In this document: positions 18,392 through 41,355 of the stretch, piece by piece
How the letters are laid out: each line of letters opens with the position of its first letter
Numbering within the stretch: the stretch's first letter is position 1
Assembly (NCBI GenBank): GCA_003693705.1
Contig: RBZT01000578.1
Location: 236,240-300,239, forward strand
Source of the DNA: Polymyxa betae A26-41
Lineage: Eukaryota; Protista; Endomyxa: Phytomyxea
Length of the DNA: 64,000 bases
Direction of reading: 5' to 3'
The notes under the pieces: generated by a model
Told to the model about the DNA's origin: nothing
Seen by the model: the letters and a program-made list of their open reading frames with translations, nothing else
The model's database searches: none
Program-made: the position numbers and the translations under genes

Positions 18392-18503
18392 TTGTGATTT
18401 ATGGAAAAAAAAGGAAAATAGAGCTTAAAAAATTATGGAATAATATATACTAGCAGCATGTTGTGCCCAACCAGGTCATAGACAGGGGCGAATTGTGGGA
18501 TAT

Positions 18504-19376
18504 TCATGCTCGACACATATTAGCATTATGGATATATCGCATCGATCGAAAATGTTCCTTCAACAGGTCGCTGAAGGGCTGTTGTCGTACGCGCCGACCA
18601 AATCGTACCGCTCCCGAAACGATCAGCTCCCGTCGACATTCATCAACCTTCGCGCTGCCGAATTTCAGCTTGGTCTCGCGAACCAACCGCGCGACATCCG
18701 ATCCGGATGCAGGTACCACCGAGACGACGTACACAGTTCGGGATTTCGCATCGACACGAATCGTGGTTTTGCGAACCGGCGTGCCGATATCGTCGTGCTT
18801 GGTAATAGTAATCTGCTTCCGATCTTTCTCTACGTTGATGACGTCGCGTTCATCCGTCATTCCTTCAATCAGCTTGCAAACCTCAGACAGGGCAACATCT
18901 GCATCGTCGCGCTCAGGTTTCTGCAACATGCTGAGCGCTTTCTCAACAGAAAGGGCGTTGTCGTTGATCATTTTCGCCACGGGCCGAATCTGTCGAAAGT
19001 TGGAGACGACAGACTGCAGTGTCGATCGAACAGCTGCCCGCAAGTCGCCACCGAATTCGTAGGGCATATCGTAATAGAAGCGAAACTCCCTCGTTTCGAC
19101 TTCTAAAGCGAAATAACCGACCGAAAGCGACGCGTTCAGCATGGCGATGAGTTCACAAACTTCAGGAACCAAATGGCACGGAATGGCATCGAATTGTGTG
19201 GCGATGAACTTGATCGTTGGAGCGCTGACGTTGAGGCGTGCCACAACAACGAGGTCATCGCTGAAGTTGAGTCGGAAGCCATTCCCTTGAACTTCGGCGT
19301 CGCAATCCAGATTCATTGTCGTAGCTGCTTGGGAGATCCAGTCTAGAGCCCGAAGAGCATCGATGCCGATCGACAT
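18504..19376 (-). CDS. YbjN/T3SS-chaperone-like protein, possibly with two tandem domains (290 aa, intronless)
   Basis: EVCELIAMLNASLSVGYFALEVETREFRFYYDM matches the YbjN pattern (..LN.....G.F.ld...g.i.f); the second half repeats the alpha/beta order; first ATG at 19376. Confidence 0.7.
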   Translation of the reverse strand: MSIGIDALRALDWISQAATTMNLDCDAEVQGNGFRLNFSDDLVVVARLNVSAPTIKFIATQFDAIPCHLVPEVCELIAMLNASLSVGYFALEVETREFRFYYDMPYEFGGDLRAAVRSTLQSVVSNFRQIRPVAKMINDNALSVEKALSMLQKPERDDADVALSEVCKLIEGMTDERDVINVEKDRKQITITKHDDIGTPVRKTTIRVDAKSRTVYVVSVVPASGSDVARLVRETKLKFGSAKVDECRRELIVSGAVRFGRRVRQQPFSDLLKEHFRSMRYIHNANMCRA

Positions 19377-20040
19377 AGAATCTTGTGTAGCCGGAAGATA
19401 CAGGATGGCAGATGCCCGCTCGACTCCTTGTTGTTGACGTTTTTGGGTGAACACCGAAAGCGTGCGTTGTTATAAATCAAGGAAAAAACTTGAAGCGGTT
19501 CGTTGTGGACGAGCAAAAAAGTATGTGCATCGGTTGACTCGAACAGATTCGGCTTCTTCATGAGAAAGTTGACTCATTTGCAAGAACTTCGTTTACATGA
19601 CTCATGATCAAGGAATTCAGCTCTTTAAAAGGATCCGACTTGGGAGATTTCTCTTATTAATACATTCATGCAGGTACAATTTCATGGTTGTAAGTTGCAA
19701 ATCTATAAGAGCGCTCAAACGATCTGGCGGCAATGTCATCTTTATATTCATCAAGAGCGCATTCTTGTGATACGTAATTGAGCTTAGATTTGCAAAGCTG
19801 CTTACGTTAAGTGGCGGTCCGCTCCAGATAGTACTGAACAGATTTTGTGTTTTTTCCCACTGGTCAGTAGTTATCAAGGTGCCGACCGCAAAAGGCACGG
19901 TTTGCGCGGATTCCATGCCGTACTGGCCCGGAAGCAAGGGGGTGCGAACATGGGCTGCGATAGAGAGACCCCATGCCCAATAGCAACCTCCGTTTAACAG
20001 GCGCGCAGATTCGCTCATATTCCTAACCGACTCTCTCGTA

Positions 20041-20661
20041 ATGGCTGCCGCTGCTCTATCCGCTGAGGCGATCGCCGAAGTCATGAACACCCAGGGCCCC
20101 GTCGTCTCCGCCGTCCTGTTGAAGGCCGACGGCACCATCGAACAGGTCTCCATCGACACCTCGCCGAAGGTCAACGCTCCCGCCGCTCTGCTGAAAGGCA
20201 ACCCGACCTTCATTGGACAGTGGCCTTCGTTGAACGTCATCATCATGTGCTCGAAGATCACTGCTGATGACTGGTCGGTTAACAAGCACAAGCTCCCCAA
20301 CCCATTCTCTAAGATCGAAGTCAAGGGCGACGTTCTGCTTCTGCGTATGGATGATGACGCTGTCCCCGCCGACTTTATGAAGGAGGAATGGGAACGATTC
20401 ACCTCGGAGCGAGATGAAACCCCAGCTGGTGAAGAAGACGAAGACTATGGACCTCTTCAGATCACAGCCAGCGAGCTGATCGACCAGATCGACGACGTCG
20501 CTGATGAGGATGACGAGGATGACGAAGAATTCGACGCTGAGGAAGATGAGGACGACTCCGATGAAGAAGACGAAGAAGAAGACGACGACGAAGAAGAGGA
20601 AGCCGATATGGAGCAAGATGAAGGTGAGAGCGCTGCCGAACCTGAACGCTCGGAACAGTAA
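20041..20661 (+). CDS. DUF5880-like protein with long Asp/Glu tail
   Basis: PTFIGQWPSLNVIIM...NKHKLPNPF...KGDVLLLRMDD...DF..EEW; about 70-residue acidic tail; strong C-ending codon bias; intronless. Confidence 0.75.
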   Translation: MAAAALSAEAIAEVMNTQGPVVSAVLLKADGTIEQVSIDTSPKVNAPAALLKGNPTFIGQWPSLNVIIMCSKITADDWSVNKHKLPNPFSKIEVKGDVLLLRMDDDAVPADFMKEEWERFTSERDETPAGEEDEDYGPLQITASELIDQIDDVADEDDEDDEEFDAEEDEDDSDEEDEEEDDDEEEEADMEQDEGESAAEPERSEQ

Positions 20662-20790: not shown

Positions 20791-21989
20791 TTAACAGAAA
20801 AAAGCGATTTCACAAAACGAGCAAAACCTTCGTAGTATTCCAATAGACATATCACCTAATTGTCGCTGCGATGGAGGAAAGGTCGAGTTGCTCAGAATAA
20901 GCGATTCGGAGACGGCATTAAACTGATGTAATCCCAACTGCAACCTTTCAAACTGGCAAGCTGAGGCAAACGATGAAGGTCTGTGAAACTCTCGTAAATG
21001 GGTATCCAAGTTTAAGCCGTAATTACTCACAGCTTCGATGGCCGTTCTTGCATCGCGAACAACACTTTTATCACTGGAGCAAACCGTTTTTCATTTGACG
21101 GAGCTCGACGTTCCAGATGGAGCTTGCCATCGACAATTCTGAAAACCGCCTGGATGGCAAACGAGTCCCAGTTGCATAATTGAAGATAAATCAGGCGCCG
21201 ATCAGATGGATTCGCTAATTCGATCATATAACGAGATTGAGAATGGCAATGCTGCAATATATTAGCAACAGCATCTACATCGATCGTATAATACGTGAAG
21301 AGAGGTTCGTTCGTCACTCGAATGGAGCGCTTCCATAAGCGATACCCATTGGGAACCTCTTCACCTAATTCACAGCCACATTCACATTTCAATTTGCCTA
21401 CAAAGACGTCGGCAGGAACAAGCAGCTCGCGAACTCCAACAAGCATTACATTTCCAATTGCAGATTCGTCAAGACGTTCGCTTGGAAGACCATAAGGACG
21501 CTCGATGTTCGACATCGTATGAGGATCGCAAACCTAAAGAAATTGATTACAGGATTCATAAAGAATCGATAACAGCACCCATAGCTCAGACATTTCCATC
21601 CAATGCTCAGACGGTAAAGGAAGGACTTTTTGTACTCTGGACAAATCGGCGACAACACGAGCACACGATCGACAGAGTAAATCTTGACGAGATGAGAGTT
21701 CAGAAGCCGATGGCAGATCCAGATCACAATCTCGCTTCATGTCGAGCGTGATAGGGCATGTTAGATTGATGGCAGACGAATTCGAAGGGGTCAACCGGGC
21801 CCGATTCGACGCCACATGACAATCGAATAGAATCTCGGCAGAGTCGGTCGGGATGGAGACCCGAGCTCGATTCAGCTCCAGATCGATCTGCACTGGATAT
21901 CCCCATGCGATCAGCACAAGACGCTTCACATGAGGTAACTTCTCTATCGTTATATAGAGACGATCTGAACATGATTCTATTGCAGTCAT
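20791..21989 (-). CDS. UBE3D: UBE3D/Ipa1-like HECT-2 domain protein
   Basis: LLCRSCAR, KVLPLPSEHWMEMSELWVC, KCECGCELG, LCNWD, IKVLF, LSNSTFPPSQR; 2 introns. Confidence 0.85.
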
Positions 21990-22171
21990 GACAGCAAATG
22001 CAACATTCGCGCTAAAAAAAATCCGAAATTTTCCCGTCAAAGCCAAATGAAAAGTCAGTTAAAAATCAGCTAATAACACCGGATGTTTAATCAATCGAAT
22101 TACAGAGGCGAGTAGTTTATGAATCAATTACCAAGCTGAAATTGCCTGAAATTACAAGCTGATGTTTAGAA

Positions 22172-23210: not shown

Positions 23211-24425
23211 TTAGTTGAATTTGATCGAGCGGACCTCGGTGTCGATATTGCCACCGCGGTAAGTGCCTCGCTTGGCCTTGGTCTTCTCATGACGGAATCC
23301 TTTGCCCTTGGTGACGATCAGCTTGTTGCTGGCCTTGGCGCCGTACGATTCACCGGCCTCCTGAAGGGCGGCGTACGAATTGTCTCGAAGACGATCATCG
23401 GCAAACTTGATTGCTTCAGCTTTGATTCGCTGAAATCTCTGTCCCGATGAAGGTGCGTCTTTCAATTTAGCTTGAGGCGTGATGACGTTGTTCCTTTTCT
23501 GTTCGCCTGCAGGACCGTCGCTCGAGCTGCTGCTGTCGTCATCGGATTCCGAACTGCTTTCGGCTTCTTCTTTGTTAGATGCCTCGGCATCACTCTCCGA
23601 ATCTTCTTCGTCGTCATTGTCGCTAGACGACGACGAATCGTTAGCTTCTTGGTCGTCGCTGGAGGCTTGGGCAACGTCTTCGGAGGAAACGGAGCAGTTC
23701 TCCTCAGACGAGCTGTCATCGTCCGATGAGGAATCCGCTTCTTCTTCGTTATCCGACCCTGCTCCGTCATCAGAATCGGACGACTCTTTGTCACTGCTGG
23801 AATCGGAGTCTTCGGCAGATACAACTTCAGCAACAGCCATAACGCCTTCTTCCGACGACGACGATCCATCGCTGTCCTCGGCGTCGTCCTGCTCCTCTTC
23901 CGACTCGGCATCTTCCTCTTCTTCATCAGACGATGACGATCCTTCTTCATCGCCGCTTTCTGACGAATCCGCCTCGTCATCACTTCCCACTACCAAAACA
24001 GTCTCGACGTTCTCGTCATCTTCAGAGGAGGAGGATGACGATGCGTCCTTTATCGATGCGTCATCCATCGATGCGTCCTCCATCTCTTCGGATTCGTTGT
24101 CGTCGGATTCTTCCTGCTCGGACTCGTCGGACGCGGTGGGCTCGCCTTCCTCGGCTTCATCGTCAACGAAGGCGCTCTTTTCAATATCCGAATCGAAATC
24201 GCTATCGGATTCTAGATCCGATTCCTCAATGACTCTCCTTCGCTTGGAAATCCTGGAAGCGTCAGGAGACCCTGCTTGGCTCCTTTTGATGGCCTTGGCG
24301 GGTTTCGCATCGGGATTCCAATCAAGATCGGCTTCTTTGACGAGTTTGGCAACGGTCTTATTCAGCCCGACGCTTTTCAGATATTCTGCGACCACGATGA
24401 GGAAACGGTCGTTTTCCGCAGTCAT
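23211..24425 (-). CDS. SRP40: Nopp140/Srp40 nucleolar phosphoprotein
   Basis: N-terminal LisH-like (VAEYLKSVGLNKTV), S/D/E-rich core, C-terminal FQRIK...DNSY...YGAKA...KGKGFRHEKTKAKRGTYRGGNID..VRSIKF. Confidence 0.95.
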   Translation of the reverse strand: MTAENDRFLIVVAEYLKSVGLNKTVAKLVKEADLDWNPDAKPAKAIKRSQAGSPDASRISKRRRVIEESDLESDSDFDSDIEKSAFVDDEAEEGEPTASDESEQEESDDNESEEMEDASMDDASIKDASSSSSSEDDENVETVLVVGSDDEADSSESGDEEGSSSSDEEEEDAESEEEQDDAEDSDGSSSSEEGVMAVAEVVSAEDSDSSSDKESSDSDDGAGSDNEEEADSSSDDDSSSEENCSVSSEDVAQASSDDQEANDSSSSSDNDDEEDSESDAEASNKEEAESSSESDDDSSSSSDGPAGEQKRNNVITPQAKLKDAPSSGQRFQRIKAEAIKFADDRLRDNSYAALQEAGESYGAKASNKLIVTKGKGFRHEKTKAKRGTYRGGNIDTEVRSIKFN

Positions 24426-24664
24426 TTGGAAGAATCGATGTGAAAACGAAATGCCGATCATAGTTAGGGTAAAAGGGGTAGTGATCGACAAAGAGACTCA
24501 CGGACTCCGGAAAAGTCCGCGCAGAACGAGAAAACCCCGCCAGATTGTTCAAAATTGTAGATGGATTTTAGGATTCTAAATTTCGCCAGTAAACAGTATT
24601 GAAGAGGCCTGCTGTAGACTACAATAAACAAGAATTTTGCCACAATAAGAAGTATATAATTAAG

Positions 24665-40854: not shown

Positions 40855-41355
40855 ATGTCCAACTCGGGGAATACGTTCCTTGATATTGCTCAAGCTATCC
40901 GAAAGCACATTGAGCTCAACCTCGGGAATTTGAAAGAGATAAACAATGAGATAAATTCCAACGAGAGGCACATGGAGTGGGTCCTTCCTAGCAAAGAATA
41001 CCGAGACGTTTTTATTCGCTTTCTTGACGAGCCTCCTTTAGAACATTCTCTGGTTGTCATTGTACAATCCAGATTTCGTGTTCCTCCAGCTCAATTCCGA
41101 AATATCGCGGTCCTCATCAATATTTTAAACATGAATTGTGATTATGGATCTTTTCGGCTGAACTATAAAACTGGTCTGGTCTCATTCGTGGCTTCTGGAT
41201 TCCACAAAGGATGCGACACAAAAGCAATGGCAGTTCGCTTTATCAAGTAAGTGAAATTACCGCTAACGGTTGTTCTCTGCTAAAACATGGCCAGGGAGGC
41301 TGATTGCAACTTGAACAAAATTGTTGACATTTGTGTTTTAAGCTCCCAAAGTTGA
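40855..41355 (+). CDS. Single-domain YbjN/T3SS-chaperone-like protein
   Basis: FRVPPAQFRNIAVLINILNMNCDYGSFRLNYKTGLVSF; GTAAGT intron near 41247, last exon KEADCNLNKIVDICVLSSQS*. Confidence 0.7.

Follow-up and report, generated by a model that had tools for sequence, protein, structure and literature searches.

A two-domain gene in Polymyxa betae

The 64,000 nucleotides analysed here, taken from contig RBZT01000578.1 of Polymyxa betae A26-41 and called the window in what follows, carry on the minus strand a gene for a protein of 290 amino acids (aa) that folds, as far as prediction goes, in two halves. It lies amid ordinary eukaryotic genes, as does its orthologue in Plasmodiophora brassicae. 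The reading that we favour, and which we hold to be probable, is that of an expressed, intronless nuclear gene whose product is a two-domain protein of the cytosol, from the YbjN / type III-chaperone-like superfamily (CL0097). Its features are as follows.

18504 to 19376, minus strand: coding sequence of the two-domain protein, 290 aa, stop codon included (list of open reading frames; start from orthologue alignment; omega 0.049 against the L001 orthologue)
18421 to 19507, minus strand: probable unspliced mRNA, 5' end at about 19507 and assembled 3' end at about 18421 (match to the L045 contig)
18921 to 19376, minus strand: N-terminal domain, residues 1-152 (folded core 4-140), with a fold like that of YbjN and of class I chaperones from type III secretion systems (T3SS)
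18507 to 18911, minus strand: C-terminal domain, residues 156-290, a probable degenerate second copy (order of elements predicted by AlphaFold2, AF2; template modelling score, TM, of 0.69 in the ESM Atlas; register with domain 2 of a paralogue)

The minus-strand open reading frame spans 18504 to 19454, that is, 316 aa counted from a GTG codon. Its first ATG delimits 18504-19376, giving 290 aa and a stop. This Met1 start is common to three orthologues (P0002-P0004, 79-83% identity in the alignment), and in the L001 orthologue an in-frame stop is found three codons 5' of the Met. A contig of the Logan collection (L045, from SRR23502435, 1087 nt) matches window positions 18421-19507 with 100% identity and no gaps, and it is on this account that the gene is read as intronless. 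The initial annotation had indeed described an intronless frame of 290 aa at 18504-19376, leaving its strand unsaid, and the frame list, the orthologue starts and the gap-free contig all confirm it. The peptides it had picked out as diagnostic (VCELIAMLNASLSVGYFALEVETREFRFYY, then ALSEVCKLI, QITIT, KTTIRV, TVYVVS, VARLVR, FGSAKVD, ELIVS and FSDLLKEHF) are all present in the translation.

Three contigs, L045, L001 and L016, which are three different sequence variants, share a conserved 5' start, CACAACGAACCG. Here, probably, transcription begins of an mRNA that stays unspliced and is about 1.1 kb long, and we infer from their size and common 5' end that the Logan contigs derive from RNA. The gene is real, and both its halves are under strong purifying selection, with omega around 0.05. 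Compared with the L001 orthologue, 82% identical, the proportion of synonymous differences (pS) is 0.71, near saturation, against 0.10 for nonsynonymous differences (pN). The resulting omega of 0.049 for the whole gene splits into 0.044 (residues 1-152) and 0.055 (residues 156-290). These values being similar, the two halves are equally constrained as coding sequence.

The N-terminal half has the YbjN fold

AF2 predicts in this half a helix (4-20), four strands (25-30, 33-38, 42-49, 54-64), a helix (67-83), two strands (88-91, 97-105) and a last helix (112-138). Comparison of the predicted structure with known folds shows that it shares the three-dimensional fold of solved YbjN proteins across the whole domain. 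In the list of similar chains from the PDB, where each chain appears once, by its best alignment, the chaperone chains all align to the N-terminal domain. The YbjN / class I T3SS chaperone fold that had been proposed for this half from a signature in its sequence is thus borne out: the N-terminal domain shares its fold with YbjN, to which it is remotely homologous.

By profile comparison, too, the N-terminal half is homologous to bona fide YbjN members. The profile of the family (A2) aligns with a paralogue encoded on contig C409 of the same genome with an hhalign probability of 96.2 (E 2.2e-9), over 244 columns that take in both halves. The profile of the N-terminal half alone matches domain 1 of that paralogue at E 5.1e-9 and domain 2 at E 1.2e-7. 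Set against 8 bacterial YbjN proteins aligned independently, it gives E 9.2e-4 over 121 columns, and 3.3e-6 once the paralogues are added, while reversed controls give E 0.38 (range about 0.4-0.7). As a single sequence, YbjN of Escherichia coli is not detectably similar to any of the profiles.

The Pfam model of YbjN, PF10722, has a cut-off of 22 bits. The window protein does not match it even at E <= 10, either whole or cut in halves. Two of its orthologues fall below the cut-off (P0005 with 20.3 bits; P0006 with 13.8 bits, over profile positions 7-121 of 126). As a consequence of this missed cut-off, we file the protein at the level of the superfamily or clan, as a divergent branch, and not as a member of the family as defined in Pfam.

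A probable degenerate second copy in the C-terminal half

In the C-terminal half AF2 predicts a helix (158-173), four strands (178-183, 188-194, 200-209, 214-222), a helix (226-234), two strands (241-245, 250-258) and a helix (267-287). This is, element for element, the order of the N-terminal half, and the predicted local distance difference test (pLDDT) of these blocks is mostly 80-88. A repeated order had been noticed in the letters alone. The prediction reproduces it in both halves, but with four strands before the middle helix rather than three. The ESM Atlas model, which uses no alignment, points in the same direction: over residues 155-290, 129 residues align, with a TM of 0.69 by query, to a cluster of which 88% is PF10722. 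The half also keeps register, when aligned, with domain 2 of the C409 paralogue, a bona fide second YbjN domain. Finally, conserved residues L237, F239, G240 and D245 (L-x-F-G-x4-D) occupy the position equivalent to that of N81...G87 (N-x5-G) in the N-terminal half.

The signal in sequence is of another order. Used alone, the C-terminal profile gives an hhalign E of 0.01 with domain 2 of the C409 paralogue (reversed control 0.88) and a marginal 0.041 with bacterial YbjN (reversed control 0.56); searches of PDB profiles and of Pfam gave no match for this half. It might then be argued that only the N-terminal half is YbjN-like, the other being an unrelated two-layer alpha/beta domain of the kind seen in Med17C, in the repeat modules of MED14, in the C-domain of ARPC2, in FP domains or in the C-terminal domain of MotA. 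Sequence signals that are marginal or absent speak for this view. It has to face, however, the identical order of secondary structure, the Atlas match, the register kept with the second domain of the paralogue, and the fact that the weak matches always fall on the same helix 2 and hairpin, scoring better than reversed controls. That no chaperone chain was listed for the C-terminal domain is not a negative result, because each PDB chain is listed once and the N-terminal domain takes them all. We consider an unrelated domain rather improbable, and a strongly diverged duplicate of the N-terminal, YbjN-type domain likely. As to the tandem repeat claimed by the initial annotation, the order of elements is repeated and the layout is kept in distant relatives of 285-313 aa, but the sequence signal of the second half stays marginal, with E values of 0.01-0.04.

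Several observations weigh against the reading of the gene that we favour, and they are best seen together. Searches of Pfam, NCBIfam and PDB sequences with the window protein, whole or as halves, gave no match. Within the family the two halves do not match each other significantly (E 0.21), and the C-terminal half taken as a single sequence gives E values of 0.17-0.72, the same as reversed controls. Among the sequences aligned for the high-confidence AF2 model were paralogues whose second domain is truly YbjN, and these may steer the prediction of the C-terminal domain. With four close sequences only, pLDDT falls to 53.7 and residues 225-290 lie below 50. Despite the good per-residue confidence of the fuller model, its predicted TM score (pTM) is 0.50, so that packing between the domains, and with it the relative placement of the halves, is uncertain. 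No client, partner or phenotype was found for the protein. Even for YbjN itself, a role as chaperone is not settled (PMC13466201).

Other YbjN-like genes in the genome

The gene is not alone. At least three further YbjN-like genes are present in the genome, namely the tandem gene on C409 and two single-domain genes on C882, all of them clearer cases than the second member proposed by the initial annotation. The former (L009:784-2037, identical to L019:979-2232) has a first domain that scores 30.6 bits with PF10722, above the cut-off. Its two domains match each other (hhalign E 3.2e-12) and the second matches the bacterial profile at E 1.1e-4. After an intron at about residue 300, the gene continues in another frame. 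Orthologues were found in P. brassicae data (P0008) and in a metagenome (P0009). Just downstream of the tandem gene lie protein-kinase genes (L012-L014). Compared with the window protein, to which it aligns end to end in the alignment of 244 columns described above, the C409 paralogue has the same two-domain layout. It differs in that both its domains keep the classic YbjN signature, whereas the second domain of the window family is nearly devoid of sequence signal, and in that it is longer, with its intron and a C-terminal extension. On C882 the two adjacent genes (L024:1501-1908 and about L024:2185-2685) carry the classic signature. With PF10722 the first scores 20.8 bits, and the pair match each other with an hhalign E of 1.5e-9.

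A further candidate lies in the window itself, where the initial annotation had placed a second family member at 40855-41355.

40855 to 41246, plus strand: exon 1, a candidate YbjN-like domain, unproven (weak hhalign matches)
41295 to 41355, plus strand: exon 2, read from the sequence, after a 48-nt GT..AG intron

A gene with two exons does exist there, with an intron of 48 nt (GTAAGT...AG, 41247-41294, plus strand). Its membership of the family depends on weak profile matches, the best of them at E 7.9e-4. Searches used exon 1 only: it has no Pfam or NCBIfam match and no paralogue in the genome. It carries a YbjN-like helix-hairpin motif, LINILNMNCDYGSFRLNYKTGLVSF, and hhalign gives it E 0.017 with A2, 0.003-0.22 with the Polymyxa YbjN domains, and the 7.9e-4 just mentioned with bacterial YbjN, over 63 columns (reversed control 0.69). 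Weak as they are, the matches always fall in register at helix 2 and the hairpin. That this gene belongs to the YbjN-like family is plausible, yet unproven.

Distribution and evolution of the family

A profile search over 1.84 billion cluster representatives, with a threshold of E <= 0.001, retrieved four clusters only.

Polymyxa-like cluster, 290-291 aa, E 1.9e-190: the window protein and P0002-P0004
P0005 cluster, 306 aa, E 1.5e-26: P. brassicae
P0006 cluster, 313 aa, E 6.7e-15: a JGI metagenome
P0007 cluster, 285 aa, E 2.8e-8: a giant-virus-like contig

The P. brassicae member, P0005, is annotated as "hypothetical protein PBRA_003674" (UniProt A0A0G4II04). In chromosome-scale assemblies of this organism the orthologue sits beside genes for a myosin, a syntaxin and an ABCA protein. 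Close relatives also comprise a handful of environmental transcript-like contigs. A word-based protein search returned relatives at 79-83% identity only, to which a wider alignment added none; the metagenome scan returned known members only, and scans of IMG/VR with the family alignment and with P0007 returned no relative. The family is thus tiny, its members coming from phytomyxids, a few sequences of environmental origin and a single giant-virus-like contig. No paper was found that links YbjN to phytomyxids, and PBRA_003674 is mentioned neither in the searchable literature nor in the supplementary files of the paper on the P. brassicae genome.

The distant relatives, all of 285-313 aa, align across both halves, and the two-domain layout is therefore ancestral to the family. 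In a tree of the domains, the N-terminal halves of the family form a clade with support 100/98, branching as (P0007,(P0006,(window,P0005))). The tree, which is unrooted, has long branches and holds P0007 as a composition outlier, does not group the N-terminal half of the family with domain 1 of the C409 paralogue.

Gene neighbourhood

Close to the YbjN-like gene, and in inverted orientation relative to it, lies a conserved neighbour.

20041 to 20661, plus strand: DUF5880 gene with an acidic tail (PF19208, 124.9 bits), given as context only, no functional link being shown

In P. brassicae the DUF5880 orthologue (L005:9197-9910), 59% identical, directly adjoins PBRA_003674. Beyond this pair synteny is not kept between Polymyxa and Plasmodiophora, and the outer flanks differ. 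The Polymyxa and Plasmodiophora copies of the YbjN-like protein are about 27-29% identical, against 59% for the adjoining DUF5880 proteins. Hence the family evolves fast over long spans, while being under tight constraint over short ones.

Other genes of the window were recognized in passing. On the minus strand, at 21027-22046, two consecutive open reading frames match HECT_2 (PF09814, E2-binding HECT-like) at profile positions 22-147 and 205-315, and probably belong to a single gene that a short intron interrupts. Further on, at 23211-24491 (minus strand), a Nopp140/SRP40-like gene codes for an SRP40_C domain (99 bits) with a weak N-terminal match to LisH.

This neighbourhood bears on the origin of the gene. 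YbjN is predominantly prokaryotic (PMC13466201) and is carried by 54 of 101 sampled Pseudomonadota genomes, so that a bacterial contaminant, or a recent insertion from bacteria, has to be considered. Such an origin is at odds with 64 kb of eukaryotic surroundings, where the DUF5880, HECT_2-domain and SRP40/Nopp140-like genes are found, and with the profile search over the 1.84 billion representatives, where no bacterial protein came as close as E 0.001; we give it practically no weight. Contamination proper is excluded by the gene context together with the chromosomal orthologue of P. brassicae. The host is a plasmodiophorid (Phytomyxea, Rhizaria), a protist parasitic on roots and most likely Polymyxa betae, and not a bacterium. 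The eukaryotic host assigned from the DNA alone was thus rightly seen, and is more precisely a phytomyxid.

A possible exchange with giant viruses

The presence of P0007 in the family raises another question, whether a giant virus (Nucleocytoviricota) and the phytomyxid lineage exchanged the gene, and perhaps its DUF5880 neighbour with it. In that case the gene may serve in the interplay between virus and host and not in the core biology of the cell. The contig that carries P0007 looks like a fragment of a Nucleocytoviricota genome: it is 13 kb long, with 32-39% GC, dense and intronless (L002, L003; Logan SRR22103503), and it codes for a Pox_A22/Ydc2-type resolvase, a weak match to a capping enzyme, an HMG box, DUF5755 and three glycosyltransferases (GT6/GT11/PLOD-type). 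P0007 is the outermost member inside the family clade (100/98), and the YbjN-like and DUF5880 genes stay adjacent in two genera even though their outer flanks differ. PF19208, the DUF5880 family, also comes up in a paper about NCLDV genomes. In BFVD, the fold is found as a single domain in phages and in one mimivirus protein.

Other data do not fit so well. The P0007 contig showed no gene for a capsid, a polymerase or a packaging ATPase, so that its viral nature is putative; nor does it carry a DUF5880 gene. IMG/VR is without a match, and the local GC of 0.48 at the gene is not unusual for a window of about 44-45% GC. The limits of the tree given above (no root, long branches, the odd composition of P0007) weaken its testimony, and they make the direction of transfer between virus and host unreadable. 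We see such an exchange as a possibility to be entertained at rather low odds. It is compatible with the two-domain, YbjN-type protein that we favour.

Comparison with known systems

The clan to which we assign the protein, CL0097, the clan of T3SS chaperones, is predominantly prokaryotic, and within it YbjN is the member most widely spread and least understood (PMC13466201); the superfamily has been termed TY-chaperones by the Aravind group. Solved structures of YbjN (PF10722) comprise E. coli YbjN (6VU7), Erwinia AmyR (5FR7), Deinococcus DR_1245 (4H5B) and a Synechococcus protein (2PLG). They are single-domain proteins from a predominantly prokaryotic family, whereas the window protein is eukaryotic, gives no match to the PF10722 model and would add a degenerate second domain to its chain. 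In the sampled Pseudomonadota genomes all matches to PF10722 (61 of 61, at E <= 0.001) were single-domain, and none of the 101 genomes had two matches in one frame. One E. coli genome record (L033) gave no match to PF10722 though a ybjN DNA pattern had found the record and a control genome of E. coli does match; possibly the stretch is masked, or this is an artefact of filtering. In PMC13466201 the structures of E. coli YbjN and of CesT are shown with two subunits each.

With class I T3SS chaperones (SicP, ExsC, VecA, CesT, SycE and Spa15, all of CL0097) the window protein has no detectable sequence similarity. These belong with a T3SS and a cognate effector, while the window gene adjoins a DUF5880-family gene, with no effector beside it, in a eukaryotic host. 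A closer likeness is that of TY-Chap2, from bacterial ADP-ribose conflict systems, where two T3SS/YbjN-type chaperone domains are found in one polypeptide (Iyer, Burroughs, Aravind and co-workers 2022, PMC9503650). This is the same single-chain double architecture as that proposed here, likened by description only. TY-Chap2 is bacterial and embedded in ARG-centric conflict operons, unlike the window gene.

In eukaryotes, a two-domain analogue is ARPC2 (p34-Arc) of the Arp2/3 complex, with a global TM of about 0.25 and no relation in sequence. Could the protein simply be a highly diverged orthologue of ARPC2, or of a Mediator subunit such as Med14 or Med17? Foldseek aligns about 300 columns with ARPC2 at a probability of 0.9-0.97 and about 254 columns with MED14 at 0.93-0.98, and ARPC2 is of similar length. 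Yet TM is only 0.22-0.29, with a root-mean-square deviation of 14-19 A, and the window protein has no Pfam match to PF04045 or PF08638. We regard this orthology as extremely improbable. A canonical ARPC2 is encoded elsewhere in the genome (contig C118; PF04045, 187 bits), and so is Med14 (contig C479; PF08638, 38.5 bits), on which grounds each was rejected as an orthologue. The canonical genes being encoded elsewhere, the fold matches are those of architectural analogues and not of orthologues. EspG of type VII secretion, considered as another pseudo-dimeric analogue, was in no fold list and no supporting paper was found, and we make no use of it. Since single-chain doubles are already known, as in TY-Chap2 and ARPC2, the YbjN-type protein of Polymyxa represents a divergent variant associated with eukaryotes and viruses rather than a new kind of system.

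What the protein might do

If the C-terminal domain is indeed a duplicate, a single chain would unite the two subunits that in bacterial YbjN and in class I chaperones come together as a homodimer. The initial annotation had envisaged such a pre-built dimer; with a pTM of 0.50, the packing of the two halves against each other is uncertain. A pseudo-dimeric monomer of this kind might grip a client protein in the cytosol along an extended segment, in a role that would be separate from any secretion machine. By analogy with its bacterial counterparts, we tentatively propose an adaptor or holdase that would bind peptides or proteins in the cytosol, a proposal that we put at less than even. The N-terminus, MSIGIDALRALDW..., read from the sequence, is not hydrophobic, which makes a signal peptide unlikely.

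No eukaryote is known to have a T3SS, and a secretion-chaperone function in a eukaryotic cytosol is implausible. The initial annotation had gone further, imagining a chaperone system for client or effector proteins. Nothing in the results upholds this idea: no client, no secretion context and no signal peptide were found. A narrower version would confine a single-chain TY-type chaperone to phytomyxids and giant viruses and give it a client of its own, which could be the neighbouring DUF5880 protein with its acidic tail; it seems to us very unlikely. Were it true, a fold hitherto studied in bacteria only would serve a eukaryotic and viral module of chaperone and client.

No new mechanism is revealed here, and nothing in this work links the gene to virulence. 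What the YbjN-type protein of Polymyxa brings is, rather, a wider range for the YbjN fold: such genes form a small set in plasmodiophorid parasites of crops, at least four in one Polymyxa genome, two of them double-domain. One fast-evolving branch is common to phytomyxids and to a giant-virus-like contig. Proteins left as "uncharacterized", such as PBRA_003674 of P. brassicae, gain an annotation. And the protein of the window would offer a natural single-chain version with which to ask what it is that YbjN-type domains bind.

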